Below the pieces are notes generated by a model, which was not told where the DNA came from, did no database searches, and saw nothing but the letters and a program-made list of their open reading frames with translations. 64,000 bases of DNA from Setoptus koraiensis (lineage: Eukaryota > Animalia > Arthropoda): the NCBI GenBank assembly GCA_048013815.1, contig CM106585.1, forward strand, positions 3,162,001-3,226,000, in the 5' to 3' direction. The translations under genes were made by a program, and so were the position numbers. This document shows, piece by piece, positions 2,617-54,091 of this stretch; the stretch's first letter is position 1; the number at the start of each line of letters is the position of its first letter.

Positions 2617-2617
2617 T

Positions 2618-7080: not shown

Positions 7081-8371
7081 CAGAGTTCTCAGTTCGATGG
7101 TCAGTGTTCGATGGTCACAATTCGAAGTTCGAAATTCGAAATTGAAAACTCGAATTTCTGATGATAGTTTCATCTGCTCTGTCGAAGTTCGATGGTCAGT
7201 TTTCGTCGTTCGATGGTCAATGTTCGGTGGTCACAATTCGAACTTCGAAAATGAAAATTCGAATTTCTGATAGGAGTTACAGCTGCTTGTTCGATGTTCG
7301 ATGGTCAGGGTTTGATGGTCAGTATTCGATGGTCAGAGTTCGGTGGTCACAATCCGAACTTCGAAAATGAAAATTCGAATTTCTGATAGGAGTTACAGCT
7401 GCTTGTTCGATGTTCGATGGTCAGTGTTCGGTGGTCAGAGTTCGATGGTAACAATTCGAACTTCGAAATTCGAAAATTGAGAATTCGAATTCCTGATGAT
7501 AGTTCCATCTGCTTGTTCGATGTTCGATGGTCAGGGTTTGATGGTCAGTATTCGATGGTCAGAGTTCGGTGGTCACAATCCGAACTTAGAACTTCGAATA
7601 TCTGATAGGAGTTACAGCTGCTTGTTCGATGTTCGATGGTCAGTGTTCGGTGGTCAGGGTTTGATGGTCAGTGTTCGGTGGTCAGAGTTCGATGGTAACA
7701 ATTCGAACTTCGAAATTCGAAAATTGAGAATTCGAATTCCTGATGATAGTTCCATCTGCTTGTTCGTTGTTCGATGGTCAGGGTTTGATGGTCAGTATTC
7801 GATGATCACAATACGAAGTTCGAAATTCGAAAATTGAAAATTCGAATTTCTGATGAGAGTTTCAGGTGCTCGTTCGGAGTTGATGGTTCAGTGTTCGATG
7901 GTGGGAGTTCGATGGTCACAGTTCGAAATTCGAAATTGAAAACTCGAATTTCTGTTGACAGTTTCATCTGCTCGTTCGATGGTCAGTGTTCGATGGTTGG
8001 AGCTCGAAGTTCGGTGGTAACAATTCGAAGTTCGATGGTCACATTTTGAACTTCGAAATTCGTAATCGATGCACTATAACAAAGCGTGCGCCATTGACTG
8101 ATTGGTGTGTCTAACTGAATTACACATTGTGGCGAGAATGACCATCAAAATCTTACTAAATTCCGCACGCAAGAAATCAACATGTGTATCATGCTGGGAT
8201 AGAAATTTGGAGAACTTGTATTTATTCTCTTCTACGGCTCTTCTCGGCTACTTTGATTCGACAGGCATAGATGTTCAACTCCGACATGTTGTCACATACT
8301 CGCATCAATATTCCAACGATACTCATCTTTCCAAAAAATTAAGCGCTCGAGATACTGATTCAATCAGTATC
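7081..8371 (+). mobile_element. HINE 3' part: satellite, unique region and terminal hairpin
   Basis: Satellite 7081-8070; subTIR AAAATTAAGCGCT (~8335-8347); hairpin GATACTGAT-tca-ATCAGTATC (8351-8371). Confidence 0.75.
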
Positions 8372-8924: not shown

Positions 8925-9308
8925 AGATGAAAATATCATCAGGAATTCGAATTTCGAAGTTCGAAATGTGAACATCGAGCTCTGACCATCGAACTCTGAC
9001 CATCGAACTTCGACAGAGCAGCTGATACTATCATCAGAAATTCGAATTTTCAATTTCGAATTTCGATTTGTCACCACCGAACCCCTCACAAATTTGACCT
9101 AGTCAAATCTCCTAAGGATTGCATGCGAAATATTTTCGATTGAAGCGATAATAGACCAAGTCGAATCTACATAGGAATACATGTGTAATGTCTAACAGGA
9201 TTCTCACAAATTTGACCAAGTCAAACCTCCATAGGATTACATAGTCACGTGAATAAACGTAGAGCCCAGAACCGCATCAATAGCTACTCAATTAAAATTG
9301 AGCGCTAA
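8925..9308 (-). mobile_element. HINE 5' part (truncated satellite plus end)
   Basis: Short satellite, then the conserved ~250-bp block ending CTCAATTAAAATTGAGCGCTAA; same block at 34510-34760, 35760-36008 and 58635-58884. Confidence 0.75.
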
Positions 9309-10500: not shown

Positions 10501-10578
10501 AAAAGGAGGAAGAAAAATGTACAGTCAACTGAATAGCACTCAAATTATTACAGATACAGAATCAACTGTTAACAAGTA
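10501..10578 (+). repeat. Polypurine tract and truncated 3' LTR start
   Basis: AAAAGGAGGAAGAAAAA directly followed by TG (10518) downstream of the env fragment; cut by a HINE end. Confidence 0.5.
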
Positions 10579-11635
10579 AAACTGATCAAATCAGTATTTC
10601 GAGCGCCTAATTTTTTGTGTGGACGATTATCGTTGAAAGACTAGGAGGAGTTTATGACAACCTGTTAGCGCTCGCATCGATGAATTGATGCATACGTGGT
10701 AGCTAAGAATACCAGAGATCTCAGCTATACCACTATGTGACTCCTTTCGTCGCGGACAAGACTAATGGTACGGATGATTACAAGGATCTGTCCGCTCCTT
10801 AGCTATCACACAGTGAAGTACAGTAATGCAGCTTTGGCCGTGCTAATTGTGCGTGTGTCATAGCTGAGAAATTGTGCATCTTCAGCTATGGCGCTGTTCA
10901 GTTGAGTTATGTGCCTTTGACTGTGCTAATTGTGTGTGTCATAGCTGAGAACTGTTCAATTCTCAGCTATGACGCTGTTCAGTTGAGTTATGTCCCTTTC
11001 ACTGAGCTCATTATGATTCACTAGATCCAAGCTAGCTATTATTTGATTCTCGTGCATCCGATCTTAATCAAGTAGTAACCTTCTGCAATGCTTAATTATT
11101 CTAGTGGGCATCTCAGCTTCAAGTTCGTCACTCTCACCTAGCTCGAATCATCGCATAACTTGTGCTGCGAGACAATTGTCAACTTGAGTAGCTTCTACTG
11201 TACGGTGATCTCCTTGTCTCATGACTACTAGCTTACCGTGCGCTAGATCCTAATTGTCTACAGCTAGCCTTCTGATGTGCTAGATCAACCTAGTTCGCAT
11301 CTCAGCCTTCTCTGTATCAATGTTTTCTAGTGATTCTGCCTCCTAGCTGTTCCTGTGTTAAATTTAATGAACCAACATTTAAGCGTTCTATTGTACTGAA
11401 TTTACCTAGTTTTCGCCTTGGTAGCTTCCCTAGTGCTAAATCCAAAATCTAAACAGCTCGCATTCTCCCCTGCTAATTTTTACTAGTTAGCGTCCCAGCT
11501 TTCACTGTATAATTGATTTCTTATGACTCCGCCTCCTAGCTTTCCCTGTACTAACAAACTAGATAGATTTAGAACGATGAAACATACTAGATACTTCCCG
11601 ACGCCTTCACTGTACTGATTTCTCCTAGAACAAGT
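10579..11635 (-). mobile_element. HINE 3' portion, interrupted by another HINE
   Basis: Starts with hairpin ACTGAT-caa-ATCAGT and degenerate subTIR AGCGCCTAATTTT; 10590-10760 is the reverse complement of ~1180-1350. Confidence 0.65.
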
Positions 11636-13573
11636 TATACTGATTATACCAGTATAAGAGTGCTTAATTTTTCCAGTGAACAATCTTAGAGGTTTGGACA
11701 GTTTATTAAGAAGTGATAAGTGCTAGCTGTCACTAGAAAGTTTTTTTAGAATTTATCCTGGTGAGAACAGTTTCGAAAATTGAACATACTGTGGAAGAAC
11801 ATGTGCCACAAAATGGCCTATATCGCCAATTCTAGAAACAGAACAGTTTCGAAAATTGCACATAATGTATGGGCACATGTGATCAGAAATCACATGTATT
11901 GAATTAGCTAACATGATCCAGAATTGTCCAAAGCGCCAATACTAGAAACAGAAAATTGATAAAACTTGCACAGATCGTGTATGGCACAGTGCTTGCTGTC
12001 TCAAGAAAGTTTCAAGAATTTATCCTGGTGAGAACAGTTTCAAAAATCGCACATAATGTAATACTTGCACAAAATGTTGCGAGCAACATGCACAACACAC
12101 ACACGAAGTATCATCAAAACGGATAGGTGGGAACATGTTCAGAAATTGATGACTATACATGACATCCGTCATCCGAAATTTTTCTCTGTCTCAAAAACGA
12201 CCTATTGATGGCTGATCATACTTGCACAGAATGTTGCGAGTAACATGTACAACACACACACGAAGTATCATCAAAACGGATAGGTGGGAACATGTTCAGA
12301 TATCACGATATTCACATGACATCCGTCATCCGAAATTTTTCTCTGTCTCAAAAACGACCTATTGATGGCTGATCATACTTGCACAGAATGTTGCGAGTAA
12401 CATGTACAACACACACACGAAGTATCATCAAAACGGATAGGTGGGAACATGTTCAGATATCACGATATTCACATGACATCCGTCATCCGAAATTTCTCTC
12501 TGTCTCGAAAACGACCTATTGATGGCTGATCATACTTGCACAGAATGTTGCGAGTAACATGTACAACACACACACGAAGTATCATCAAAACGGATAGGTG
12601 GGAACATGTTCAAATATCACGATATTCACATGTGATCAGAAATCAGATGTATTGAATGAGCTAACATGATCCAGAATTGCCTATAGCGCCAATACTAGAA
12701 ACAGAAAATTGATAAGACTTGCACAGATCGTGTATGGCACAGTGCTAGCTGTCTCTAGAAAGTTTCAAAAATTTATCCTGGTGAGAACAGTTTCGAAAAT
12801 CGCACATAATGTATGGGCACATGTGCCACAATATGGCCTATAGCGCCAATACTAGAAACAGAAAATTGATAAGACTTGCACAGATCGTGTATAGCATCGA
12901 TCCACCTCCTCACAATACATTAACCTCTGCATGAGCCTGGGACTTAAAATTCAATTCACCTCCCTGAAATGTGTGTTTGGGAGGTGGACGAACCTTCGAG
13001 TCTCAAACTTGTATGTAGGTTGTTGCATGCTCAGGAGGTGAACTTATTGTTTAAGCTCAAGCTAGTCCACCTCCCAAGCATGAGTCGCCCCACGCTATTT
13101 TGAGTAGCTAAACCTATCTCGTTATAGCTTCGGTCCACCTCCTAACTAGACATGAGCCCGAGACTCAAGATTCAATCCACCTCCCTAGTAAATGTGTATT
13201 TGGGAGGTGGACGAACTTTTGAATCTCAAGCTTGAGTGTACCTCCCACCTCCCACCTCCCAAGCACATTCCTGCCTACACACTCACTAAGCACTGATTAT
13301 GCTAGTGCTAATGTATGCAAGCACACAGCGCGTGACTCTCAAGATCGAAAACTGTGAATATCCACAAATAAATCGGTACGTGGATATTCACTGGCATACA
13401 AAGTCGGAGTATTCACAAGCACACAGCGCGTGAATCACCATAGCACAATTGGTGAATATCCTATGAAATGCAAGAACTAAGTATCCACCATCATACCGTG
13501 CGTGGATATTCATGCGTGATTTATAGGATCCAACAACACTACATCATAAGCCCTTAATTAAAATTAAGCGCTA
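11636..13573 (-). mobile_element. HINE subfamily X with both ends
   Basis: Hairpin TATACTG-attatac-CAGTATA (11636-11656) plus subTIR AGTGCTTAATTTT; other end CTTAATTAAAATTAAGCGCTAA at 13553-13574; internal minisatellites. Confidence 0.65.
12062..12640. repeat. 157-bp tandem repeat (~3.7 copies)
   Basis: ATACTTGCACA(G/A)AATGTTGCGAG unit at ~12061, 12218, 12375 and 12532. Confidence 0.9.
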
Positions 13574-13586
13574 ATTACGACGAGAG

Positions 13587-16500
13587 ATGTCGAAGTCAGT
13601 CAATGCCATCGGGCAAACTGACCAAAATTCACGACAAAGTCGTAGGAAAGGAGTACCCAACCGCCAAGATAGTAGCCGAAGGCCCAGAAGCTCAGGCGAC
13701 AACGCGGGCGGGAATAATAGACAAGAGCGTAGTAGTAAAAGAAATAAAAAGCGCGAGTGCTTCAAGTGCGGGCGAACGTCCCACATTGCACGCGAGTGTT
13801 ATGCTCGCACAAAGCGCGACGGAACGCAGATTCCAACACAGCCAAAAAATCCTGATCGCGTAGCGACGATAGAGGATAACGCCAGTAAGGTTCCAACTAG
13901 AGTGAAGCAAGTCTTCAGTGGAAAAGCGCCACCCAACCTACCGTCACCTCCGAGTGAACGTGTAGGAGCGGTGCAAATCGTAGGCGCCGTGCGCAGCAGT
14001 GAAATAACTCATCCAGTTCGAATTCGCGACCGGGTCATCACGGCATTGATGGACACGGGTAGTGAGTATTCGTTAATCTCTTTAAATGTGGTAAATGAGC
14101 TGGAGTTAAGGGTCCCAAGAGGCTGTAAGGTCTTGTTGAATTCACCCGACGGGAAACCCCTGTCGGTGATTGGCATTACGAGCCAGTATGTTTGTATCAC
14201 GGTCGGCGGTAGAGACAAATGGGGTCTACACGACATGATCGTGATCAAGGATCTCGACGCCGACATGATCATTGGAAGGTCGTTAATGGACGATTTCGAC
14301 ATTTCGATTAATGTCAGGAGTCGTCGCATAATGTTCAATGATACCGAGCGTGTAGCCTCGGTAAGTGCCGAAACTCCGGTTAGAGGCGGAGTATATGCTA
14401 TCCGCGATGTGGTCGTAAGCCCCAGACACCAACAGGTTATCGAGACTAAGATCAATCGTGACGCAACGGTACTAATGAGGGGACACAGAAGCAACGAATT
14501 GATCGTCGCTAACTCGCTCGATAAGGCAGAAAACGGTAAATGCCGCGTCGTCGTGGCAAACATTACCACCGAGCCTAGACTGGTGAAGGCTGGGGAACGA
14601 CTCGCAGAGTTCGAGGTCCTCCATCGACCAGCCAGCGGAGTTCATGCAGTGGTCGCGCTACAGAAAGAGGCTGTCAAGGGGCAGAAAGCCACCATACAAG
14701 TCGGCGATGGACTAAACGACAGGCAGATACAGGAGATAAGAGCTTTAGTTGAGAAATATATGGACGTATTTAATTACGATGGGCGTCTCGGTAAGACGAG
14801 TCTAGCTCGACATTCCATAACTTTAAAAAAGGATTGCCACCCCGTCGCCGAACCCCTCCGACGCAATGCTTTAGTTGAGAGCGTCGAGATCAACCAACAG
14901 GTTAATGAAATGCTCGAGAAAGGGGTGATAGAGGAATCACAGTCCCCATGGGCTTCAGCAATCGTTTTAGTTAAGAAAAAGAATGGAAAAATGAGGTTTT
15001 GCGTAGATTTTAGACGTTTAAACGAGGTGACTGTGGAGTGGAAATATCCACTTCCTCGTATCGACGATATGATAGATAGCATGAGAGGCCGAAAGTATTT
15101 CACGTGCCTAGATTTAGCGTCGGGATACTGGCAGATTGAAATGGACCCAGTCGCCAAACCTTTGACCGCTTTTCGCACGAAGGACGGCCAGTATCAGTTT
15201 AAACGTATGCCTTTCGGGCTGGTTAATAGTGGAGCAAGCTTTCAAAAGCTGGTGGACGTGTTGTTCGCTGGAATGAAAGGCGTAGAACTCCAAGTATATG
15301 TCGACGACATTTGTGTGGCGTCGCCTTCTTGGAAAGAGCACCTCGTAGCTTTAGAAGAAGTATTTAAGAGAGTCCGCCAAGCGGGGCTCGTTGTACAGCA
15401 TGAGAAGTGCACGTTCGGATATTCCGAAACAATATTCTTGGGACATAAGATTAGTGAAGACGGGATCAGTCCCGATCCTAGTAAGGTGAAGGCAATCCAC
15501 GAGATGCCGGCACCTACCGATGTACATGACGTGCGAAGGTTCCTAGGAATGACAGGGTATTACAGGAGATTCATTAAGAACTACGCAACGGTGTCTGACG
15601 CGTTGGTAGAGTTGACGAAAAAAGACAAGCCTTTTACATGGGGGCCAAGCGAGGTTGAATCGTTTGATAGCTTGAAAAGAGCGTTGCTAGAGAATGCAAC
15701 TGTGGCGCATTATGATCCGACCAAGGAACTGCTTCTAAAAACGGATGCCTCAACCGTAGGCGTTGCAGGCATCTTGTTGCAAAAGGACGGCGACGAATTC
15801 AAGATTCTGTCATGCGTTAGCCGTCGCCTCTGTGCAAGCGAGAGGAATTATGGAATAACCGAGTTAGAAGCGTTAGCCATAGTTTTCTCGGTGCAACAAT
15901 TCAGGCCATACATTCTAGGGAGGACAGTAGTCGTTCTCACAGACCATTGCGCTCTGTGCGCGGTGGGCAAGAAAAGAATGAAGTCGAGACGATTAGAGAG
16001 ATGGGCATGTATTCTAGCGGAGTTTAGTTTGGATATAAGGTATATCAAAGGCAACAAACATGAAGACGTAGACTGCCTTAGTAGGGCGCCGATTGGCGAT
16101 GAAATTGACCATTTTCCGGCGCAGAGTGTATTTTTAGTCCTACCGGTTGACACAGATGAGTGGATCAGAGAGTATGAGAACAACGAAGAAGCGCAGAGAC
16201 TCCTAGCCGAAGGAGCCGAGATGTTTATTTTGCAAGGGGTTATATACGACAGCGATCGTAGACTGTACGTGCCTCAAAAATTTCGAAAAGGATTCCTTGA
16301 GAGGGCACATGATAGTCAACTGGCAAACCACGGTGGTATTAGCGCAACCATCGCGTTACTTAGAGCAGACTATTTTTGGCCAAGTTTAGCCGAGGACGTA
16401 GAGACTTACGTAAAGGCATGCGAAACCTGCCAGAGACGTAAGGCAGTGAGAGCGAGAGAGTTCGGTTTGATGAATTCTTTCGACGTTGCCATGCCGTTTG

Positions 16501-19121
16501 ATTTAGTGGCCGTGGACTGCATTGGTCCAATCAACCCCGGGTCAAGACATGTCATGGTCGCTATCGATGTATTTACCAGATTCGTCGAGCTAAAAGTGGT
16601 AAACAACGTATCCGCTAGCGAGTTTGCGAAATTTTTACTCGAAAATATTGTGGCGAGGCATGGTCCGCCGAAGAGTCTTTTGACGGACAACGCAGCCACT
16701 TTCGGTAGTGACACGGTTAGAGAGCTGGAGAAACTCATGATAATTAAACATATTCGAAGTACCCCTACGCACTCGCGTGGCAATGCGGTGGTAGAAAGGG
16801 TGAATCAGACGATTGGGGACAAGTTAGCTATGATCATCTGGGGAGACGACAGCTACCAGAGAGAAAATTGGCCGGAAGCTATACCTTTTGTTGCCTATTC
16901 AATTAACGTTTCGAGACATTCTTCGACAGGTTTTTCACCATTCGAACTGGTCTATGGGCGACAGCCCCAGCTAATGGATGAGACGGTCAAACAAGGGGAA
17001 GTGACCGTCCATCAGCTTTATAGTAAGCTCGTGAAATTACGATTGGAAACAGATATCAAAGAGGCGTATAGAAGCAATAAAGAGGCACAGATGCGTAGTC
17101 GACGTTATTTCAATGCTGAGCATATTCAGAGAGAGTTTAGTGTAGGTGACGTAGTATGGGTGCATAAGAAAGAGGCGAGGAGACCGAAATTGAAGCCACG
17201 GTATGAAGGCCCGTACGTCATTGTGGCTAGAAAACCGCACGACATCTATGAATTGAAACACCTAGAGTCGGATAAGAGCACCATCCTGAGACACGTAAGC
17301 GCGCTCAAGATATGCCATGGAGTGCACAGTGCTGAGTCGGAGACAGAGTCGAATGGAAGTGAAGACAGTGGAGACGAATCGAGAGCGGATGTTGATCTAG
17401 ACGCACCCGCAGGGACGGTCAACGCAGTTCGTAGTCAAGGCACTATGTATCGAGGTGAAACATGGTTGAGAGCTTTCGTGACATTGATGCTATTTTCGGT
17501 CTGCATACAACTCACGGAGACCGCCGAACATGTCTTGTCTGCCGAATCGCCCATTTTGTGGAAACGAACCGAGAAATTTGTCATCACTGGTTTGACAGAG
17601 TACGAATACATGATCGTTTTCGAATCGCCGTGTAATATCTTTATCGGCATGACGGCGGATGCGGCACTAAACAACCAATACTTTGTAGAGTGTCAGACTT
17701 TATTCAAGGCGGTTATACTTAATAAGGTAGGAGCTTGGTGCAGCATCATACCAGAAGCGGTAGCTGACGATTTCGAAATACCAAGTCAAGTGACTAAGTC
17801 TCGTTTTAGGAGAAGCGAAAACAACACAACAGAAGGTGTGAAAGAGAAGAGGCAGGTGGCCGTCGGAATTGCCGCGGGACTGTCTTTAGAGTGGTGCATC
17901 ACGAGGTTGTACGACTCGGTCTCGGGCTATTTCCGGAGGTCGTCTGACCAGGCCACTGAAGAGAACAATAGAGTTATCCAAGAAGAGATAGTGAAGATGC
18001 GAAACACTTTGAACGCATCATTGGTAATCCAAAACGCAAGGAAAGCGGTTTGGGAGGATGTTTTAAGTAACCAAGAGTCCGTTTTGGCGTCCTTGGGGAA
18101 GATCAGCGCGGCGTTTCCACATGCAACGTGGACCTCGATCTACGTGGCAAACTTAATGTACGCTCGATCGAGATACCTGGATGACATCATCCACGAGTGG
18201 AAGCGCGGGCGCATATCCGAATCATTGGGGTATTTGTTGAACTCCACGACGTTAGTGAACTTACTCCCAGCTGCAACGACAGCCAAGAGCTGCTGCCTCC
18301 ATTCCGGGAACATGGTGATGATTAAATTTTGGACAAAGAACGTTGACAGGAACTCGTTTGTGGTCACCGCCGATCCTTTCAAGATTTACACCAATTTAAC
18401 TAGACAACCGACATTGAGGGAGTACTCGGGACCCGTCCATTTGATTTACAATCGTTCTAGTGATTGTACTAAGAGTATAGACGTTGATAACAATATGTTC
18501 ATTTCAGGCAGCTGTACAGAACAGCATCACCATGAGGATTTGAGGAGTATGTGGAGACCGCTGGTCACACATGACACAATCACTGGCATTGTGCCAACAA
18601 ATGAGGCCAAAGTAGATTACAGGGCCATGCATGTATATTGCTATCCCGGAAACATAACCGTGGGAGGGGAAGCAATGAATTGCCCACCTTACGTGTTCAA
18701 AATCGATAATACAATATCATGGAATTTGACAGATCGCTCTTACGCAGCCACTCCTGATTCAATCAAGTTGCAAGCAATTTTAGGGTTTAGAACTTTCGTG
18801 CCCGTACCGTCTACGAAGATCGCTCCCGAAGGGTTGACAATCTTCGATGCCCTTAAACGCATCCAAGAGATGCAAGAAGTTTTGAGCAAGTTAGACAAAG
18901 AATCTCTTGGACTTACTGATCACACTAAGCAAATAGTGACTTTGTCCAAGCATAACGCAACCTTAGATTTCATCTTGCTATTGCTGGTCGCGATGATCGC
19001 GGTATCTGCGTTCAGATGCATCCGAAGTCGCGGAGTCTTTACGCAGACCCAAAACAGAACACAGCATCTAGGATTGAATACAATCGTCGTAGCGCCCGCG
19101 ACGAGTGCTACATCGACTTAA
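13587..19121 (+). CDS. pol: Gag(C-terminal)-Pol-Env single polyprotein (1844 aa as annotated; N-terminus truncated)
   Basis: CCHC knuckle CFKCGRTSHIAREC; protease ALMDTGS; RT LDLASGYWQ/YVDD; RNase H TDAS; integrase HH-CC, DCIGP, TDNA, ERVN, GPY. In-frame signal peptide from ~17445, basic sites RFRR/KEKR, Cys-rich ectodomain, TM (FILLLLVAMIAVSAF). Confidence 0.95.
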   Translation: MSKSVNAIGQTDQNSRQSRRKGVPNRQDSSRRPRSSGDNAGGNNRQERSSKRNKKRECFKCGRTSHIARECYARTKRDGTQIPTQPKNPDRVATIEDNASKVPTRVKQVFSGKAPPNLPSPPSERVGAVQIVGAVRSSEITHPVRIRDRVITALMDTGSEYSLISLNVVNELELRVPRGCKVLLNSPDGKPLSVIGITSQYVCITVGGRDKWGLHDMIVIKDLDADMIIGRSLMDDFDISINVRSRRIMFNDTERVASVSAETPVRGGVYAIRDVVVSPRHQQVIETKINRDATVLMRGHRSNELIVANSLDKAENGKCRVVVANITTEPRLVKAGERLAEFEVLHRPASGVHAVVALQKEAVKGQKATIQVGDGLNDRQIQEIRALVEKYMDVFNYDGRLGKTSLARHSITLKKDCHPVAEPLRRNALVESVEINQQVNEMLEKGVIEESQSPWASAIVLVKKKNGKMRFCVDFRRLNEVTVEWKYPLPRIDDMIDSMRGRKYFTCLDLASGYWQIEMDPVAKPLTAFRTKDGQYQFKRMPFGLVNSGASFQKLVDVLFAGMKGVELQVYVDDICVASPSWKEHLVALEEVFKRVRQAGLVVQHEKCTFGYSETIFLGHKISEDGISPDPSKVKAIHEMPAPTDVHDVRRFLGMTGYYRRFIKNYATVSDALVELTKKDKPFTWGPSEVESFDSLKRALLENATVAHYDPTKELLLKTDASTVGVAGILLQKDGDEFKILSCVSRRLCASERNYGITELEALAIVFSVQQFRPYILGRTVVVLTDHCALCAVGKKRMKSRRLERWACILAEFSLDIRYIKGNKHEDVDCLSRAPIGDEIDHFPAQSVFLVLPVDTDEWIREYENNEEAQRLLAEGAEMFILQGVIYDSDRRLYVPQKFRKGFLERAHDSQLANHGGISATIALLRADYFWPSLAEDVETYVKACETCQRRKAVRAREFGLMNSFDVAMPFDLVAVDCIGPINPGSRHVMVAIDVFTRFVELKVVNNVSASEFAKFLLENIVARHGPPKSLLTDNAATFGSDTVRELEKLMIIKHIRSTPTHSRGNAVVERVNQTIGDKLAMIIWGDDSYQRENWPEAIPFVAYSINVSRHSSTGFSPFELVYGRQPQLMDETVKQGEVTVHQLYSKLVKLRLETDIKEAYRSNKEAQMRSRRYFNAEHIQREFSVGDVVWVHKKEARRPKLKPRYEGPYVIVARKPHDIYELKHLESDKSTILRHVSALKICHGVHSAESETESNGSEDSGDESRADVDLDAPAGTVNAVRSQGTMYRGETWLRAFVTLMLFSVCIQLTETAEHVLSAESPILWKRTEKFVITGLTEYEYMIVFESPCNIFIGMTADAALNNQYFVECQTLFKAVILNKVGAWCSIIPEAVADDFEIPSQVTKSRFRRSENNTTEGVKEKRQVAVGIAAGLSLEWCITRLYDSVSGYFRRSSDQATEENNRVIQEEIVKMRNTLNASLVIQNARKAVWEDVLSNQESVLASLGKISAAFPHATWTSIYVANLMYARSRYLDDIIHEWKRGRISESLGYLLNSTTLVNLLPAATTAKSCCLHSGNMVMIKFWTKNVDRNSFVVTADPFKIYTNLTRQPTLREYSGPVHLIYNRSSDCTKSIDVDNNMFISGSCTEQHHHEDLRSMWRPLVTHDTITGIVPTNEAKVDYRAMHVYCYPGNITVGGEAMNCPPYVFKIDNTISWNLTDRSYAATPDSIKLQAILGFRTFVPVPSTKIAPEGLTIFDALKRIQEMQEVLSKLDKESLGLTDHTKQIVTLSKHNATLDFILLLLVAMIAVSAFRCIRSRGVFTQTQNRTQHLGLNTIVVAPATSATST

Positions 19122-19205
19122 TGAGTTTCGCAGAAGTTGTCGTTGATGTTGCATTACCCTATGTTTCGTTGTTTTTCATTTCCCATCCCAAATTTGCAGG
19201 TGTCG

Positions 19206-19652
19206 ATGTCGGAGCGAGTGTATCGAGTAGTTGCATGCAGATATTTAACAAGTGGAATACAATACGAGGTCAGTCCGCAGGATCGAAACGGAAACCTCTA
19301 TAAATCATATTGGGTTCCAGAAAGCGAATTGGAAACTTTAAACGTGATCAACGACTATTATCAAGAGAGAGGAAGCATCAACATTCCTGCTGACCCAGAA
19401 TTTAGACGGATAAGAGCCGAACGAATTTGGGGCTCTAGCTATTATCTTGCTCTGATCCCAAATACAGGAAGATCACTAAAGCGATTCCGTATAACCCTCA
19501 AAACAGTCGAGGGCTATCGAAAGCACTTTACGGTAGCGTACGGACCTTGCCTAGAGAGAGACGGAGACGGGGTTAACCTTTTCCGCATTCATTTGTTATT
19601 CGTAAGACACGAGCACCGTGACAATTCGCTACGAGTCTTAAATTTCGCATAA
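19206..19652 (+). CDS. Accessory protein 1 (chromo-like N-terminus plus PNTG/YGP domain), ~148 aa
   Basis: First ATG at 19206 (the track start at 19137 is TTG). Homologous by eye to 19654-20130 and 43910-44392. Confidence 0.7.
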   Translation: MSERVYRVVACRYLTSGIQYEVSPQDRNGNLYKSYWVPESELETLNVINDYYQERGSINIPADPEFRRIRAERIWGSSYYLALIPNTGRSLKRFRITLKTVEGYRKHFTVAYGPCLERDGDGVNLFRIHLLFVRHEHRDNSLRVLNFA

Positions 19653-19653
19653 A

Positions 19654-20130
19654 ATGGCCATGGAGTACGACAACGAGAACGGTCGCCCCCTAAAAGTAAT
19701 TGGAATGCGATGTTACGCAGGCAATAGGGTGCAATACGAGGCAACCGTCCTGTATGAAAATCAACGACCTGGTCGTGCAAGATGGTATTTTCCGGATGAA
19801 CTTCCGCAGCCAATCATCCAGGCTTACCGTGTAGAGGCCGATGTCTACAGCGCAGCAGATCGGATCAATTTCATAAGAGTGGACGAGTTTCGGGCCTACA
19901 ATTTGATAGGGACCGGCTATTTCTTGACCGAGCTACCCAACACTGGCTTTGAGATTACGCAATACAAGGTCACTCTGGTCCCTGATGACGATCGAGCACG
20001 ATCATGTTATCTAGTATACGGACCGCGTCTACACATATACCGAAGTGGAGTTGATACCGTAACACCCCACCAGGTAATGTTAGAATATGACCTCGAGAGG
20101 GAGATGTTCAGGATCGCCCGAACCGTTTGA
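19654..20130 (+). CDS. Accessory protein 2 (paralog of accessory protein 1), 158 aa
   Basis: Shares VQYE, W, YFLTELPNTG and VYGP motifs; its stop overlaps the PPT. Confidence 0.72.
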   Translation: MAMEYDNENGRPLKVIGMRCYAGNRVQYEATVLYENQRPGRARWYFPDELPQPIIQAYRVEADVYSAADRINFIRVDEFRAYNLIGTGYFLTELPNTGFEITQYKVTLVPDDDRARSCYLVYGPRLHIYRSGVDTVTPHQVMLEYDLEREMFRIARTV

Positions 20131-20140
20131 GGGGAGGGGA

Positions 20141-20432
20141 TGTTACGATGCAGCCAGTGAATGTCAATCGCAAATGCCAGCGATTGACATTCACCAACTT
20201 ATTGTTATGATTTTAAAATGAAACATAATTTGTAGGCCAGATGTCTCTCTGGAAAGTTCCAGAAAGACATCTGGCAAACGCAATCATATATATACATGTG
20301 ACACAGAGAAATAAATCTAAGCTTTGAAATTAGTATAACGTCTCTGCGTCACCCTTGTCCATTTTTATGTATTAGGCGTAGCGTCGAGCGCACAGGGAGG
20401 AGTTTGTATGGGATATGCCATGTTGTATAACA
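20141..20432 (+). repeat. G1 3' LTR (292 bp) preceded by PPT GAGGGGAGGGGA
   Basis: TGTTA...TAACA termini; purine tract at 20129-20140; AATAAA at ~20310. Confidence 0.85.
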
Positions 20433-20935
20433 ACTGTGCCATACACGATCTGTGCAAGTCTTATCAATTTTCTGTTTCTAGTATTGGCGCTATAGGCAAT
20501 TCTGGATCATGTTAGCTCATTCAATACATGTGATTTCTGATCACATGTGAATATCGTGATATTTGAACATGTTCCCACCTATCCGTTTTGATGATACTGC
20601 ATGTGTGTGTTGTGCATGTTGCTCGCAACATTATGTGCTAGTATGATCAGAAATCAATTGGTCGTTTTCGAGACAGAAAGAAATTTTGGCTGACGGATGT
20701 CATGTGAATATCGTGATATTTGAACATGTTCCCACCTATCCGTTTTGATGATACTCTGTGTGTGTGTGTTGTGCATGTTGCTCGCAACATTTTGTGCACG
20801 TATGATCAGAAATCAATTGGTCGTTTTCGAGACATAGAGAAATTTCGGATGACGGATGTCATGTATAGTCATCGATTTCTGAACATGTTCCCACCTATCC
20901 GTTTTGATGATACTGCGTGTATGTGTTGCGCATGT
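20433..20935 (+). mobile_element. HINE subfamily X internal fragment, inverted relative to 12060-12740
   Basis: Near-exact reverse complement of 12600-12740, followed by 157-bp repeat units. Confidence 0.85.
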
Positions 20936-21456: not shown

Positions 21457-21650
21457 TGTCACGGCCTGGCCGTGCTGAGCCCGCTGACGAGGAGTTGAGC
21501 CTATCGACTCAACTGCCTCGCAGTGTCGCGTTACGCGAGAACGAATAAAAGAGCGAGGAGAAGGATCATTCTCGTTCGAGTTAAAGGATGTATAAAGCAA
21601 AAGAAATAATAAAATATATATACAAAAATACACAAAAATCAACCTTAACA
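21457..21650 (+). repeat. G2 5' LTR
   Basis: TG...CA; identical to 27699-27892. Confidence 0.95.
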
Positions 21651-21668
21651 TGGTGCGGCAACCATTGA
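21651..21668 (+). promoter_or_regulatory. Primer-binding site of G2
   Basis: TGGTGCGGCAACC... immediately after the LTR's CA; primer tRNA not identified. Confidence 0.7.
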
Positions 21669-21761
21669 CCAGTGTAATCTAGCATTTATCATTGGTTCCG
21701 CAAAAACTGAAAGACACAACGTGAAGAAAACCACAGAGACGATACGTCTCACAAAAAAAAA

Positions 21762-24700
21762 ATGGATACTAAAGGGGATCCAAGTTCATCAAAGGATGGA
21801 CACAACGCTGAACCAAGCCAGGAACCACTTGACGAGATCGCGACAACCCTTGCGACCGTCATGCGTTCAAACCTTACTAAAGAGGCAAAAAAATTTGTGG
21901 AGCAAGTGTTAAAAGACATGAGTGCCGGCAAGAGCCCCCAAGGGTCAACTCCGCCGCCACCCATACGGAGAGTGCATGCACCTGCCCAAAGTGTTGCAGG
22001 AAATCATTCTAACCAAGGCATTGACCTAAGCAAATTAGTCCGCAAACCACGCATGTTCAACGGCTCAAATTCGACAGCCAGAGCGTGGATGGAGGAGTAC
22101 GAATTCTCCTGTGAGCTCAACTCATGGTCAGAAAGTGAGATGGTAAAGTACTTCCCTGCATATTAAGAAGGGTCAGCCCTGAGCTGGTTCAAGTATTACG
22201 TCAAGGTGCCCGCTACTGAGCAACAAGAACTGATAACATGGCAGTTCATCAAGCATAAATTTTGTAAGAACTATTTCTCAGCAATGAACGCTTCGGCACT
22301 AAGCAAGCAGATCGACGGCAAAGCACAGGGTCACAATGAACCCGTCAATGCATTCATTGCCGATATGAGAGCCTTGCTCAAAATCTACGATCCCGAAATG
22401 AGCGAAACTAAACAGGTCCTCAAAATCAGAGAACGCCTATTACCAGTGTTTCAAAAGTTTGTTTCGATAAGTGATCCTACGACATATGAAGCCCTAGTGG
22501 ATTTGTGTGTTAAAATCGAAGTGGGCGAGGAAGCCTCGCACCCGAAATCAAAGAACGTCAGTCTAGTGATCGACCGCGACAAGTCCAAAAGCGAGAAGAA
22601 CGAAAAAGGGCGTACACGTCGCAACAGGCGGGGTAGCGACAAGAAAAAGTTTACAAGAGCACCAGTAGATATGTCAAAAACTTGCTCTAGGTGTGAGCGT
22701 CATGGCCACCTAAAGCACGAGTGCTTCGCCAAGTCTAAAGCAGACCGCTCCGAGCTTCATGATAAACCGCCTTGCACGAGACCGACGAAAACAGACAACA
22801 ATGTCCAATTGCCTAAATGTGCACCAAGCACCTCTAAGGAAGCTACGATGGAGATCAAAACAATCAAACACGTAGCCACTATTGTAGGTAGCATCGAACC
22901 CGAGACAATCCCGTATATCGAAATATTCGCAAGAATAGAAGGTAGAATGATAAGCAGCATGGTCGATACCGGTGCGCTACTCACCGCCGCTATGAGCGAA
23001 GCAACTGCTCGGGCGTGTGGGTTCATAATACAACCATATCCAGTAAAGTTGAATTTAAAAGGGGCGAATGGTATCCGATTGCGTATGCTCGGCACTACGG
23101 TGCAAGAAACCGAAATAAGGCTGGGTAACATGACTAAAATTTTAAATGTCGAATACCATGTCATCCGCCACTTGCCAGTTGCCGTTATAATCGGCAAAAC
23201 TTTACTGAAGCGGTTGAGAATATGCATCCGCTGCGATGTATCTGAAGACAAGCTATCGTACATCGACGATGAAGACGACAGGCAATACGACAGAGTCATC
23301 GATCAAGCGCAACCGTCATTAACAGTATGTCCAGTGGTCACAACAGAGCAGCGACCATCTAAGAAGTCGGGGACAGTTATTGCAGCCGAGATGCAAAGAA
23401 TCAATCAACGCACCCAACAGTTCGTTAGCGTTATAGTAGAGGCCGAGCATGATATGCTGATTCGCCCTTGCAACGAATCGAAAGGGTTGAGCGTCGCAAA
23501 CGGTATATATAGCCCGTCGAGCGACAACAAAATATTAGTCATGAACACGACTAATGCTCCCATCGTAATCAAAAAGGGAGCAGTTGTGGCAAGGTACGAA
23601 ACCTTGAGTGACAGTGAGATCGCCGAATCAGACCCGGCTATCAACGCCATATTAGAGGTCGATGAAACTGGATCAACGATAGAAGTCGGCGACGAATTAG
23701 ACGAACAACAGATTCGTGAAGTGAAAGAGCTGATAGTCGAGTATAAAGACGTTTTCTCCTTTGATGGCGAGCTAGGATGCACAGAATCGTGCGAGCATGA
23801 CATAGAGTTGCTGCCTGGATCGAAACCAACGGCCGAGCCATTGCGTCGACACGCGCATGTGGAGAAAGAGGCCGTGAAAAAACAGATAAACGACATGCTC
23901 GCTAAAGGCGTGATAGAAAAGTCCTCATCGCCGTGGGCCAGCGCATATGTGCTGGTCAAGAAAAAAAACGGTCAGCTACGCTTCTGCGTAGATTACCGTC
24001 GAGTCAATGCACAAACAAAGAGAAATGTCTACCCGCTGCCACGGTTAGACGACTGCCTGGATTTTATGACAGGCAAGGTATACTTTACGCTGCTAGATTT
24101 TGCCTCTGGGTATTGGCAGATACCGATGGCTAAAAATGCGCGTGAAGTAACGGCATTTAGAACTCACGAGGGCCTATGGCAATTTAAGGTCATGCCGTTC
24201 GGGCTGACAAACAGCGGCGCGTCCTTCCAACGCATGGTGGACGCGGTATTTAGTGGGTTAAAAAACGAAGACCTCATGGTCTTCATCGACGATACCTGCG
24301 TTGCATCAAGCAGCTGGACGGAACATATGGCTGCTCTAAAAAAAGTCTTCAGCTGTATCCGCAACGCCAAATTGAAACTACAACCCCCTAAATGCAAGAT
24401 AGGCACAACCTCCGTTAGGTTCCTTGGACATCGAATATCGAAACAAGGCATTCAACCCGACGAAGATCTGGTCAAAGCCATCAAAAACTTTCCAGTACCG
24501 ACATCCGTCACCCAAGTCAGATCGTTTCTAGGCAAGGCATCCTATTATAGGAGGTTTATACCTAAGCTGGCCGAGATGTCGGGACCATTGATTGAGCTGA
24601 CGCACAAAAACGCGGCGTTCAGATGGGAAGCTGAACAAGCGAACGCGTTTGGAAAAATCAAAAGTGCGCTGAGCTCCGAGTTATGCGTCGCCTGCTACAA

Positions 24701-26738
24701 CCCAACTCTCGACACTCGGCTCAAAACAGATGCCAGTACCGAGGGGTTTGGTGCCATCTTACAGCAGCGCCACCCAAATGGGTGGATGATCGTCGCATGC
24801 GCTTCTAAAAGGTTGAGCGACAGCGAGAAACGTTATTCGGTTACAAAGCTCGAGGCGGCCGCACTCATGTGGGCTATCGACAGGTATCGAGCGTACCTAC
24901 TTGGCAGGCCGTTTACCGTGCTGGTGGACCATTGCGCCCTGTGCGTAATGGGCAAGAAGCGTCCAAGGTCACCTCAGTTAGCACGCTGGGCAATGTTATT
25001 GAACGAATACGACCTTAAAATCGAGTACGTCAAGGGCAAATTACACGCCGACGTAGACTGTTTGTCGCGGAATGCTGTCGACGAACATGATCACATCGCG
25101 GAACGGGCGATTATTTTCATCGGAATGATCATTCCGACCAACACGGACGATTGGATTAACGAATACGAAACCTCAGTGGAAGCCCAAGCTCTCCTTAACA
25201 AAGCGGCCGAAAATGAAGGAATGGTAACGATTGATGATGTGCTATACGACGCCAACAACAAATTATACGTGCCGGCTCGGTTGAGAAGAGAGTTCATATC
25301 CCGGGCCCACGATGATTTGCTTACAGGCCATGGCGGCCGCAAAGCAACATACGAACACCTCCACCGTAATTACTGGTGGCCAAGCATGGTGCTGGATATC
25401 AACAATTATGTAGATAGCTGCGCCATATGCCAACAACGCAAGGTGCCACGGCAAAGGCAAGCTGGTCATATGAGATCGTTCGAGTGTACCTCAGTTTTCG
25501 AGCTCGTCGCTATTGACTGCATTGGGCCGTTGCCACCGTCCACCAAACAGAATAGGCACATATTCGTAGCGATAGACACTTTTTCGAGGTTTGTAGAGGT
25601 GAAAGCGGACGAGGAAGTGTCATCTGTCAAATTCGCGAAATTTCTAATTGCTAATGTGGTGTCCCGATATGGCACACCGCAGCAGATTTTGACAGACAAT
25701 GCTCAAACTTTTGGAGCTGAAGTTGTAAAGGAAGTGTGCAAGCTTTTTGAAATTAAACACCTCCGATCGACTCCCTTGCATTCGCAAGGCAACGCCATTG
25801 TCGAGCGTGTAAACGCAACGATAGGCGACAAACTGGCGATGATAATAAATGGGCACGATCAATTTAGTCGAGACAACTGGGACGACGCTCTGCCCATGAT
25901 CGCATATGCAATAAACACGACCGTACACTCCTCGCTGGGAGTATCACCTTTCGAGTTGATGTACGGTCGAACACCAATTTTGTTAACTAGCGAGACAAAA
26001 GTCAAAAACATGACCGTACACCAACTGTACTCGAAAATGACAAAGTTGCAACTTGAAGCCAACATCGCTATAGCAATCAACTCCAATGCGATGGCAGCCG
26101 CAGCCGCAAAGACCAGATATGACAAAAAAAGATCAAACGTCTCGTTTAGCATAGGTGATAAAGTGTGGGTACTCAAAAATCAAGCCCGTGGCGCAAAGTT
26201 GAGTAATCGTAGCGACGGTCCCTACACTATCTCTGACGTCCGAAACAACAATATTTACGAGATGGAACACGATCAAACCAATAAAAAAATCGTGCGACAT
26301 GTTTCATTGCTACGGAAGTATGTGCCGAGAAACGACTCGAATGAGTCCGACGCAGCAAATAACTCAGACTCCACGACGACATCGCAAACCCCATCAGGCA
26401 GAAGCTCCCATTCCAGGTCATCGAGTGCGTCGAGCGTCCTTACTCAAGCGATAATGTTGATATACGCGGCAACATCAGTAATGTGTAACGGCAACATACG
26501 TCAAGAATCGCCCATCGTCTGGCGAAAGATGGAGTCAACAACGGTGCAAGGTGACAAACACTGGGACCTTGCAATCACTTTTGTGTCGCCCTGCAGAGCC
26601 TTCGTCAATGAGACGCACGACCTGTGTGAGCAATATTATCAGAAAGAAATCGTCGATCGATTAAACGGTTGGTCCATCGACTCGCGGACAAAATGCCTAG
26701 AGAAATATGGGCGGCGCTATATGTACAAGGCAGGATAG
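21762..26738 (+). pseudogene. pol: G2 gag-pol-env(N-terminal) ORF with one premature stop at 22164-22166
   Basis: ORFs 21762-22166 and 22206-26738 are in the same frame. YFPAY*EGSALSW restores a typical gag motif if TAA was TTA. Contains MVDTGA, FIDD, TDAS, rve and GPY motifs and a signal peptide at ~26450. Confidence 0.9.
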
Positions 26739-27790
26739 CTAAGCAGGCAGATTGGTTAAAACAATTCACCAAAACTTGGAAGGCCGGCATGGTGTCGACG
26801 GAACTCGGGGAAATGTTAGCTTCGCCCGAATTGACCAATATCGACACTCATTCCTCATCTGCACGAGAATGCCGGAGTTTGGGAGGATCGGTGACCGGCG
26901 TAAGGCTATCGTTCACCACGAGACTCACCGACCGAAAGTCTTACGTACTGAAGGCCGACCCGTTCGAGGTGTATACTAACCTCACAAGTCGACCTTGTCT
27001 CAGTAGATACCAAGGCAGTGAATACATGCTATTAAATGAGACGGCGAATTGTATAAAACCGCTGGCAGACTCGCATGTAGGCCCATACGTAAACTTTGAT
27101 TGTAGGACTCACAATCACGCGCCTGAGGCGGCGGAACCGTGGAAACCAGTGGCTTGTTTTAAAAACCTTAACCATATCGAGGCTAAAGAGGAAATAAAGA
27201 TCACCCAAAGTAAGGTGTTCGTTTACTGCGTAGGCAACACGATAGAAATCAACGGCCGGACACGAAGGTGCCCGCCGTACGTATTCAGCGTAGACTCCGG
27301 AGCCCAATGGAAAACAAAACACCATTCTTGGTTAACAACGGTCGACGAGAGGAAAAGCGTATCCGTGGATGACTTCAACAACTCCTTATGGAATAGTCTG
27401 CTGCGCTTTAACCCGCACCACGAAGATACGGTCCAAATGATGGATAAGATCTCGGAACTAATTAACCTAACCGAGGGCATGAACCCTGAACGGTTCCGAA
27501 CGGGTCACACATTGCCGACAGAAGACGAGGCACCCTCTATGGTAATGACCATAGTGGTCACCATTGGCCTCACTGCCATTGTATGCAGCATAGCCGCTGT
27601 GTATGTTTGGACGAAGTGTGGTGGCCAGAAGAAGGTCGGTATCTACAACGTACCAGTGTTTTCGGCTCGAAACCGCGGTACGTCCTTAGGGAGAGGGATG
27701 TCACGGCCTGGCCGTGCTGAGCCCGCTGACGAGGAGTTGAGCCTATCGACTCAACTGCCTCGCAGTGTCGCGTTACGCGAGAACGAATAA
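26669..27790 (+). pseudogene. env: G2 env-like C-terminal part, frameshifted; reads into the 3' LTR
   Basis: ADPFEVYTNLT, VYCVGNTIEING...CPPYVF and TM (MVMTIVVTIGLTAIVCSIAAVYVW) align with G1 env. Confidence 0.85.
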
Positions 27791-27892
27791 AAGAGCGAGG
27801 AGAAGGATCATTCTCGTTCGAGTTAAAGGATGTATAAAGCAAAAGAAATAATAAAATATATATACAAAAATACACAAAAATCAACCTTAACA
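27699..27892 (+). repeat. G2 3' LTR
   Basis: Identical to 21457-21650. Confidence 0.95.
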
Positions 27893-30288
27893 TGCGGACA
27901 TAGACAGGTCCGTCCAGCTGTCGTCGTTTACTAACTTTTCTGAGATTTTCTGTTGACTCTGCTGTCTTTTGGTTTCTCCTAAAGCTTGAATTTCCTCTGA
28001 AGTGAGGGATTCAAAGATACTTCTGGACACACCCAACTGCATGTTTATGCGATTTGGGATGTCACCACCCATTGCTGATTGACTAATATTAGACTTCGTA
28101 TATTTATAATTGACACCATCGATTAGGAAGGTGGCTTCCCCCTCAATGGACATTACGTAGTTAGGGCAACTGCGTTTTTCGTTGTTCACGATGATGCTGT
28201 GCCCTTGGCAGTTGACCCGAACATTATGTGCGTCGTGTTTAATTTGGATTGCGGGTCCAACTGCTGGCAGAGCCGATTGCTTTCTGCAGTCAAACGGTGT
28301 AAATGTTGTAATATTAGTCAGAGGGTTGCGGTGTGTGCAGCCTTGGCTGATCACCACACCGTCTTGGATTTCCTTTTCAAGGAGCGGCCTGAAACAGTCA
28401 GAAGTGGTGTTGTACATCACATACTCGGGCCCTGTGTACCGGAATGTACATAGTAGACCCTCATGAAGGGCTATATAGCTAAAGGGGTCTGCCCTCATGA
28501 TGACTACATGAGGACTGGTTCTGAGAAGGGTGAGTTGAATTAGGAATTCATTGTTTTGCACATTCCAATGATGCACGGTGGAGTGTTTTAGTGTGCCTTT
28601 TTCCATTATGCCCGTTATATTGAAGATTTCCAGCAGCACCAGTGGAACTTCTCCGTTCCGGTGCAACTCGCTCTTGAGCTGCTGAATCTTCTTCTTTTCT
28701 TCGTTGAATTTAGACAGTGTTTGAAATAACGCTGCGTTTATGCTGGCTTGGGCCAGTGCTATATCACCGAGGTGGTCGATGTCCCGTTCAAGTTTGCCAA
28801 CCATCGTTGCTACTTTGGTGTCAAACAGGGCTATCTTATGTTGCAGTGAGATGAGTTTGTGATCCAGTCGATTTGTCATCTCTTGAAGATTGCTGATTGA
28901 GTCCGTGCTTGATTTGTCTGACAACCAATTGGAGATAGAGAAGTAAAGTGCCGATATTGATGTGATCATGGTGAGAGCGACTGCTTCACGCGTCTTTCTG
29001 ATATTGGAGGACAAACCGAGCGCTGCGACGTTGTCTGTAACATCTTCTCTGAACCTTCGAGAACACGCTTCTACAATGCTCTGATCGAGTCTTTTGACAC
29101 CTGTCATGTTTGAAAACAGTGTTGGGCAAGGGTCGTGGAATAACAGGCGTAGGTTATAATCAACTTGCCCTTCTACATGTGCAGCGTCCATTTTTCGCCA
29201 TATTATAGGATCCTCGACATGGAAAGTACTCTCAACCGAGGTGCACATAAGCATAATGCTGCAGAGCAGAACCATTGCACAGTTCATCGCCCTAGTGACG
29301 GTGGTTGTGGTTGGTTGGGAGGCTGTGTACATTGCTACGTCTTGTAAGCCAATTTTCGACCTCATGTCTGCGTGCATCTTTGGACTCAAGGGCTTGGTCA
29401 ACATGTCTGCTTTTTGCTCAGATGATGGGATGTATTGTACTTGAAACTCCTCATTATTAAGGTTTTCTCTGATGTGTAGAAGCCGGATGTCTAAGTGCTT
29501 GGTTCGTGAGTGATACTCAGGATTTTTCATGAGTTTAATAGTCGGTTGGTTGTCCACCATTAGCTTAATTCGTTGATGGCTTACTTTCAGTTCGCTGAAA
29601 ATTTTATTGAGCCATAAAATTTCCTTGGCCGCTAGGTTGGCTGCGATTAGTTCTGCCTCGGTCGTGGATAGTGCGACCAGGCCTTGTTGTTTGCTTAAAA
29701 ACGTTATTGGTCCACCAGCTACAAAGGAGATGACTCCGCTAGTCGACCTTCGCGTTTTTATGTCGCCGGCCCAGTCGGCGTCGGAGTAGCAAACGATATC
29801 AGATTTATTGTCGGCTGTAAACATCAGTCCGAGTTGGTCAGTGCCTTTGAGGTACCTAAGTATGCGCTTGGCGGCTGACCAGTGTTTTTCAAGGGGGCAG
29901 CTGTTAAATTTGGCCAGTGTGCAAACTGCGTGTAGTATGTCGGGTCTGGTGCCACATGCGCAGTACAGCAGTGAACCAATGAGCTCCCTGTATGGAGCGC
30001 TGGTTTCAATGTCGTTTTCGGAAATTTCTTGCAATTCTTTGAGGTCAGCCATCATCGGCGATGGTGCGGGTAGGCAGTCGGCCATTTTGTATAGTTCCAG
30101 CATTCGGTGAATGTAAGCTCGTTGGTGTAGAATGGTTCTTTGCTCGTTTGATATCACTTCATATCCTATAAAACAATCTGTACTTACTTGTCTCACACTC
30201 AAGTTCAGCTTCAAGTATGCAAACAGTTCGTCGAGCGCTTCTTGGCTGGTCGAGAAGGCGACGCCATCATCGACGTAGACTATCAGCC
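27893..30288 (-). CDS. pol: Copia RT C-terminus, RNase H and in-frame env-like ectodomain (truncated at both ends)
   Basis: LIVYVDD, YRELIGSLLY...TRPDI, YSDADWAGD..TRRSTSG, STTEAE, TKHLDIR and QKADMLTKPL are Copia motifs. The same frame continues into a signal peptide (~29287), RKTR plus hydrophobic peptide, heptads and a Cys-rich domain. Confidence 0.92.
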
Positions 30289-30788
30289 NNNNNNNNNNNN
30301 NNNNNNNNNNNNNNNNNNNNNNNNNNNNNNNNNNNNNNNNNNNNNNNNNNNNNNNNNNNNNNNNNNNNNNNNNNNNNNNNNNNNNNNNNNNNNNNNNNNN
30401 NNNNNNNNNNNNNNNNNNNNNNNNNNNNNNNNNNNNNNNNNNNNNNNNNNNNNNNNNNNNNNNNNNNNNNNNNNNNNNNNNNNNNNNNNNNNNNNNNNNN
30501 NNNNNNNNNNNNNNNNNNNNNNNNNNNNNNNNNNNNNNNNNNNNNNNNNNNNNNNNNNNNNNNNNNNNNNNNNNNNNNNNNNNNNNNNNNNNNNNNNNNN
30601 NNNNNNNNNNNNNNNNNNNNNNNNNNNNNNNNNNNNNNNNNNNNNNNNNNNNNNNNNNNNNNNNNNNNNNNNNNNNNNNNNNNNNNNNNNNNNNNNNNNN
30701 NNNNNNNNNNNNNNNNNNNNNNNNNNNNNNNNNNNNNNNNNNNNNNNNNNNNNNNNNNNNNNNNNNNNNNNNNNNNNNNNNNNNNNNN
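30289..30788. other. Assembly gap (500 N)
   Basis: Run of N. Confidence 1.
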
Positions 30789-34760: not shown

Positions 34761-34761
34761 A

Positions 34762-43909: not shown

Positions 43910-44392
43910 ATGGCATCCACTCCCAGAAAAATCAGCGCTGTACGAGTAGTGAACAACGACATACAATACGAAGTCAGTTATTCAGTATGGACTTCTTTGC
44001 TGGGCAGAGCTACTGAAAATAAGTGGGTCCACGCTGATGCAATAGAAAGGGCAGATCTTATTCGCGAATTTGGATCCGAGATATCATCATCGGAAATTCC
44101 TGAGTATCAACGTACATCTGAAATCATTATTACAGCGCATCAGTTAACACCACTACTACCGAATCATTATTATGCGAAAATACCAAATACTGGCATCGAT
44201 CTACTAAATTTTGTCATAGCAGCAACAGTCGAAGAAGGTCGAACAAAATGCAAAATTGTTCAATATGGACCATGTGCCATGATTAATGGCTACGGTTTTG
44301 ATGTACAGCGGAGGCATGTCTTATTTTTGAAATACTTTCCTCGAATCGATGAACTAACAATTGAAAATTCATGTGGTCTATTAGAATTATAG
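43910..44392 (+). CDS. Accessory protein 3 (same family as the G1 accessory ORFs), 160 aa
   Basis: IQYEV, KW, YYAKIPNTG and VQYGPC motifs; followed by purine tract GAAGAGGGCA and TGTTAT at 44408. Confidence 0.72.
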   Translation: MASTPRKISAVRVVNNDIQYEVSYSVWTSLLGRATENKWVHADAIERADLIREFGSEISSSEIPEYQRTSEIIITAHQLTPLLPNHYYAKIPNTGIDLLNFVIAATVEEGRTKCKIVQYGPCAMINGYGFDVQRRHVLFLKYFPRIDELTIENSCGLLEL

Positions 44393-44407
44393 ATCTTGAA
44401 GAGGGCA

Positions 44408-46608: not shown

Positions 46609-46639
46609 TTACTCCTCTCCTGTTGAATAAGAGTTGCCC

Positions 46640-54088: not shown

Positions 54089-54091
54089 AAA

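Follow-up and report, generated by a model that had tools for sequence, protein, structure and literature searches.

Chromoviruses are Ty3/gypsy elements in which a chromodomain is fused to the C-terminus of integrase, and the chromodomain is the textbook route by which Ty3/gypsy elements reach heterochromatin, as an integrase fusion only. The methyl-lysine cage of a chromodomain is made up of three aromatic residues, which in fly HP1 are Y24, W45 and Y48, and cage-deficient variants exist among the chromoviral chromodomains. Complex retroviruses place accessory genes between env and the 3' LTR. Integrase-fused chromodomains also occur in some metazoan env-carrying Ty3/gypsy elements (PMC13524379), additional open reading frames (ORFs) are known in bdelloid rotifer LTR retrotransposons (PMC5408684), and plant LTR retrotransposons carry aORFs (PMC7264820). 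Our full-text literature searches turned up no report of a chromodomain gene standing by itself behind env, nor, in the papers found, of an accessory protein that bears a chromodomain.

In the 64,000-nucleotide stretch of DNA analysed here (the window), two small genes, A and B, lie at the 3' end of a Ty3/gypsy element that we call G1 (Table 1). Like chromoviruses, G1 is a Ty3/gypsy element that encodes a chromodomain-family module. Unlike chromoviruses, it keeps this module outside pol in a separate small post-env gene, its integrase being without a chromodomain, and the module comes in two or three paralogues that are always joined to a new beta domain. HP1/CBX, Rhino, Oxpecker and Polycomb chromodomains, the sole profile relatives in the PDB, share the register of the module and its conserved core Trp and helix Tyr; unlike the HP1 family, A and B have no cage residues, hinge or chromoshadow domain, and their partner domain is unrelated to anything known. 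As small extra 3' genes, presumably expressed from spliced RNA, they resemble the rotifer and plant aORFs and the accessory genes of complex retroviruses, and we found no sequence relationship between A or B and any named accessory protein. We conclude that A and B are probably genuine accessory genes, anciently duplicated, of an env-carrying Ty3/gypsy (errantivirus-like) lineage, and we have high confidence in the description of the genes and their domains.

Table 1. Coordinates of G1, its accessory genes, their paralogue and other features, in nucleotides of the window.
Feature	Position	Strand	Description or basis
G1, retained part	13575..20432	+	NC-PR-RT-RNaseH-IN-env-like ORF, A, B, PPT, 3' LTR-like end
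Single 1844-aa ORF	13587..19121	+	Pfam matches, translation
Env-like part	17445..19121	+	558 aa from internal Met
Splice-acceptor-like site	19170..19199	+	Polypyrimidine tract ending in CAG
ORF A	19206-19652	+	148 aa, basic, pI 9.3
ORF A N-domain, chromodomain-like	19215-19370	+	Residues about 4-55
ORF A PNTG/YGP beta domain	19398-19646	+	Residues about 65-147
ORF B	19654-20130	+	158 aa, acidic, pI 5.5, paralogue of A
ORF B chromo-like part	about 19684-19839	+	Alignment to A
ORF B beta domain	about 19876-20124	+	Alignment to A
Polypurine tract (PPT)	20131..20140	+	Directly 3' of B stop codon
3' LTR-like segment	20141..20432	+	292 bp, TG..CA; TATA-like box at 20287, AATAAA at 20310
Paralogue C	43910..44392	+	160 aa, 31-32% identical to A, found by tblastn
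Purine-rich run after C	44398-44405		
LTR-like stretch after C	from 44408, perhaps to about 44593		TG-initiated
G2	21457-27892		Ty3/gypsy
G3	46334-54365	-	Full-length env-carrying Ty3/gypsy
970-aa ORF	27887-30799	-	No Pfam match
Ty1/copia element	38684-41808	-	gag, integrase, RVT_2
322-aa ORF	61836-62804	-	ISXO2-like DDE transposase domain
157-159-bp tandem array, left of G1	11719-12896	+	
157-159-bp tandem array, right of G1	20433-20935		Inverted, 92% identical
22-nt motif	1597-1618, 2617-2638	-	
22-nt motif	9287-9308, 13553-13574, 34740-34761, 35987-36008, 43783-43804, 55269-55290, 58863-58884		
Repeat X, shared 5' edge	1326-1360	-	
Repeat X, shared 5' edge	10572-10606, 57769-57803		
109-bp satellite	30792-34519		About 33 copies
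109-bp satellite	7092-7997		Inverted
109-bp satellite	58087-58550		
1.3-kb direct duplication	3388-4720, 37378-38710		99.4% identical

The long frame of G1 runs through a zinc knuckle, protease, reverse transcriptase, RNase H, an integrase and an env-like tail, and the Pfam matches RVP_2, RVT_1, RT_RNaseH, Integrase_H2C2 and rve follow one another in the Ty3/gypsy-type order. An earlier note, made from the letters of this DNA, had described the integrase as having no chromodomain, and we agree, as Pfam Chromo has no match anywhere in the 1844-aa ORF at E<=1. The integrase instead ends in an SH3-like module (residues 1187-1243). The env-like part has a hydrophobic N-terminus, nine N-glycosylation sequons, one furin-like site, 12 Cys and a C-terminal membrane span, and is homologous to the post-pol ORFs of three other Ty3/gypsy elements in the window. 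No Pfam family matches it, and we call it env-like because "env" is here a reading from such features. The polypurine tract and the LTR-like segment that close G1 are arranged as in the neighbouring element G2, which is fully bounded. Within the window we found neither a 5' copy of the LTR-like segment nor a primer-binding site, and gag lacks its capsid part. G1 is thus a 5'-truncated copy, and the absence of an LTR pair and primer-binding site is for this reason uninformative about its family. Apart from the one truncation, the retained part has no stops or frameshifts. Truncated G1 is flanked by inverted copies of a tandem array with a 157-159-bp unit, the right copy of which directly follows the 3' LTR-like end.

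Both ORFs are open on the sense strand between the env-like region and the polypurine tract, and their paralogy, which had been proposed by eye, is borne out by BLASTP (24% identity over 147 residues, E 2e-11). A single nucleotide separates the A stop codon from the B ATG. The remaining five frames of A and of B each hold 6-12 stops, and a stop-free run of at least 148 codons is rare among 5000 shuffles of the 925 nt (P = 0.005). G1 looks young, its 1844-aa frame being still open, so that the open state of A and B tells little when this one copy is taken by itself. The motifs quoted in the earlier note are present in both proteins, with one correction, as V-x-YGP fits A only and B has V-YGP.

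Relatives of A and B are few and divergent. A word search with A alone returned nothing, and a profile of A, B and the third paralogue in the window, C, returned two 148-aa proteins. When 1.84 billion representatives, irrespective of length, were searched exhaustively with the profile, 13 matches resulted, eight of them relatives and five of them long proteins; the latter we rejected as spurious, as they come from bacteria and consist of repeats, with domains of the PASTA, fn3 or propeller type. The family as known from these searches comprises 12 proteins, namely A, B, C and nine relatives that are singletons from Logan or ENA assemblies, and a word search with the 12-member profile found no new members. 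All are 148-168 aa long with full-length frames, they are 19-73% identical to one another, and R12, W36, P85, G113 and P114 are invariant among the 12. The beta domain turned up in no cellular protein among the 1.84 billion representatives.

In a neighbour-joining tree three groups stand out, all at 100% bootstrap: A-type (A, P0001, P0002), B-type (B, P0003, P0004) and D-type (P0006, P0007). A longest contig of 4466 bases is given for one protein of every type, and a longest contig of 3291 bases likewise for one of every type; these equal values, on which the point depends, are most simply read as two further elements in each of which three paralogues are neighbours. Because A- and B-type orthogroups recur in other elements, the A/B duplication predates at least three element lineages. 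A and B are each 36-48% identical to their own orthologues, and between the same two contigs A-type proteins are 73% identical, against 45% for the B-type and 38% for the D-type. Identity among A, B and C is 23-32%, a divergence at which synonymous sites are saturated. The earlier note had taken the retention of both frames despite strong divergence as a sign of selection, and the recurrence of both orthogroups with full bootstrap support supports that argument, the long-term keeping of both copies being the best evidence available here for selection.

The N-terminal domain had been described as chromo-like from its sequence pattern, and the family profile agrees. Searched against the PDB at E<=10, the 12-member profile matched 17 entries, every one a chromodomain (HP1, CBX1/3/5, Polycomb, Rhino and Oxpecker) and all in one register over profile positions 5-61; the E-values are marginal, at 0.01-0.3 with a best of 0.0095. 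One relative, P0010, passes Pfam Chromo, as its score of 28.5 bits exceeds the curated cut-off of 25.1 and the match covers the whole model. The family profile recovers P0010 from end to end at E 2.5e-7. Taken singly, A, B and C have no Pfam match at E<=10, and A and B have no PDB sequence match. Homology to the chromodomain (PF00385) is thus a statement about the family as a whole, as judged from its sequences, and does not extend to a single-sequence match for A, B or C.

The predicted structure is in keeping with this assignment. An AlphaFold model built with 12 sequences reached a pLDDT of 89.6 and a pTM of 0.82 (pLDDT 70 with five sequences), and its strands at residues 5-14, 17-25 and 35-38, followed by a helix at 47-55, give the strand-strand-strand-helix order of a chromodomain. 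One caveat is that a Foldseek search with the whole two-domain model had no chromodomain among the best 50 matches, and nothing better than E 0.01. The invariant or near-invariant residues of the domain (R12, Q19, W36 and Y51) occupy core positions.

What the domain has lost is the cage. When the cage columns are anchored on the natural sequence P0010, they (the first being the least secure, as its register is our assumption) are aromatic in 0/12, 2/12 and 1/12 members and in neither A (gap/P/L) nor B (gap/V/P), while the core Trp is kept in 12/12. As the cage is not conserved, reading of methylated histones in heterochromatin finds no support here. The predicted fold of the N-terminal domain is chromodomain-derived, and a methyl-lysine reader is not what its sequence predicts.

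The second, uncharacterised domain of the earlier note is also real. AlphaFold predicts six to eight strands and no helix for residues about 65-147, and this half holds the strongest conservation in the family (P85, N86, T87, G88, G113, P114 and D124). Its conserved Gly, Pro and Asn residues resemble turn positions, none of the conserved residues form a set suggestive of catalysis, and we read the domain as a putative binding module. It has no sequence relative in Pfam or the PDB, and Foldseek searches of the PDB and BFVD gave no usable fold match for either model. The top PDB match in both runs was PUR-alpha repeat I-II (E 0.01, probability 0.66, 20% identity), and a PUR-alpha or Whirly-like fold was rejected at a TM of 0.19 and an rmsd of 14.9 A. 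An origin of the C-terminal half by duplication of the chromo-like half was likewise rejected (hhalign probability 0.3%). Nor is the C-terminal half a chromoshadow domain, as it is all-beta, contains no helix and has no PDB or Pfam relative. The PNTG/YGP domain would be a new protein domain, with a confident predicted structure and no relative found.

The layout of signals around A and B suggests how both could be expressed. The splice-acceptor-like site ends 7 nt before the A ATG and is the sole such site in positions 17000-20200 under a simple rule; by this rule, the 10 nt behind such sites take up only 0.6% of the + strand. The A ATG has a weak context (t at -3, t at +4) and the B ATG a strong one (a at -3, g at +4). 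Only one ATG lies inside A, in a weak context and opening 22 codons, compared with 8.6 per 448 nt in pol-env, 13 in B and 13 in C; the depletion in A has P = 0.015 under synonymous codon resampling. Such an arrangement is typical of bicistronic mRNAs that are read by leaky scanning, and it suggests one spliced mRNA for A and B; termination followed by reinitiation would be an alternative to leaky scanning. No splice donor can be named because the 5' leader of G1 is missing.

Taken as a whole, the explanation of A and B that we favor is a probable one. Both genes would be expressed late from a spliced subgenomic mRNA with its acceptor just before the A ATG; ribosomes would often skip the weak A start, cross the nearly ATG-free A gene and initiate at the strong B ATG, such that a single mRNA would give rise to both proteins. 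Each protein would be a compact two-domain unit, with a cage-less, divergent chromodomain packed on the new all-beta domain, and basic A and acidic B would act as a non-enzymatic binding pair, perhaps a heteromer. Such a pair would link the replication or integration machinery, or the integrated DNA, to host chromatin proteins, acting in trans via protein or nucleic-acid contacts and with no reading of histone methylation. The chromatin role by itself is tentative, and the targeting-adaptor and anti-silencing roles offered in the earlier note are candidate roles. The TE-rich surroundings count against our explanation to a degree, as they would equally fit any heterochromatic graveyard. If it is true, a chromatin-contact function would be deliverable in trans in an env lineage whose integrase has no chromodomain, and an accessory-gene layer with retrovirus-like, spliced bicistronic expression would be added to elements that are usually seen as gag-pol-env only. 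It is conceivable, if somewhat doubtful, that chromatin contact was split from integrase into two or three co-evolving stand-alone proteins that serve as a trans-acting tether or anti-silencing shield; were that so, these proteins would represent a new class of retroelement accessory protein as well as a new domain family.

Other functions could be served by the same architecture. A cage-less chromodomain might mimic HP1/Rhino-type proteins and compete for their partners or for chromatin sites on the element, in which case A and B would be anti-silencing decoys that blunt heterochromatin-based (e.g. piRNA-guided) repression without steering integration. In favor of this are the PDB profile matches to HP1, CBX1/3/5, Polycomb, Rhino and Oxpecker chromodomains, and the faster divergence of B- and D-type proteins (45% and 38% identity vs 73% for the A-type) might occur in host conflict. 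Yet a second domain of the chromoshadow type is lacking, as the C-half is all-beta with no relation to the N-half, and with the cage lost, competition for methylated histone tails is improbable, leaving the decoy unlikely in our judgement. The strong basicity of A-type proteins (pI 9.3-9.8, net charge +5 to +11) would suit a different role, in which the chromo-like barrel binds element RNA or DNA for export, packaging or chaperoning of unspliced RNA, and the best Foldseek PDB match, PUR-alpha repeat I-II at E 0.01, is a single-strand-binding fold. However, a TM of 0.19 with an rmsd of about 15 A is no fold match, B-type proteins are acidic, and the element already has a zinc-knuckle nucleocapsid; we regard a nucleic-acid-binding factor as quite unlikely.

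It might also be argued that A and B have no function, as remnants of a captured host gene or as chance frames that are open only because the copy is young. The other frames of G1 are intact as well, as expected of a young copy, and the family is very rare in databases. Against this stand the 12 members, which at 19-73% identity all have complete frames, 148-168 aa long, and share their invariant positions, the recurrence of three orthogroups, and the lack of any cellular protein with the beta domain among the 1.84 billion representatives, and we consider an absence of function very improbable.

Paralogue C stands without pol or env, and is followed by a purine-rich run and then by an LTR-like stretch; no 5' LTR was found for it. 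The LTR-like ends of G1 and C do not align beyond their first bases, and we reject kinship between them. Searches of the window by tblastn with all relatives and by six-frame HMM gave only A, B and C, with no further or degenerate copies, and a third G1 paralogue in the window is rejected on the same grounds. G2 and G3 have env-like genes, yet no A/B-like genes. G2 has identical 194-bp LTRs and a TGG-initiated primer-binding site, its env-like ORF extends into the 3' LTR, one interruption lies between its gag and pol frames, and its ends showed no matching target-site duplication. G3 has 274-bp LTRs that are 99.3% identical, and only about 30 nt lie between its env-like ORF and 3' LTR, which leaves it with no accessory gene. 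The 970-aa ORF is distantly similar to the integrase C-end and env-like part of G1, and appears to have been cut by the insertion of G2, as it stops exactly at the edge of the G2 3' LTR.

The window also contains a repeat, X, whose 3' edge is a 22-nt motif with a perfect palindrome. The motif has nine copies in the window, where none would be expected by chance, and X contains tandem arrays. Behind each + strand copy of the motif that could be read lies a Ty3/gypsy piece that is truncated at its 5' end and has the orientation of the motif: G1 from the zinc knuckle onward, RNase H-integrase, integrase, post-integrase and env-like pieces, and paralogue C, which the 3' edge of X precedes by about 105 nt. 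Two of the three 5' edges of X start 0 or 57 nt after the polypurine tract that closes the preceding retroelement piece, so that units of X plus retro-fragment run head to tail. Candidate identities for X are a satellite carrier of the Helitron/Helentron type, a target for site-specific insertion and a leader-body junction. The 109-bp satellite has higher-order periods of 211 and 320 bp, and all its arrays stop at an X-type motif.

Neither tRNA nor Rfam matches were found in the window. Its Ty1/copia element is split over two overlapping ORFs. The transposase domain of the 322-aa ORF (Pfam E 6e-22) is unusual in a eukaryote-like repeat landscape, and the 1.3-kb direct duplication includes an integrase-coding fragment.
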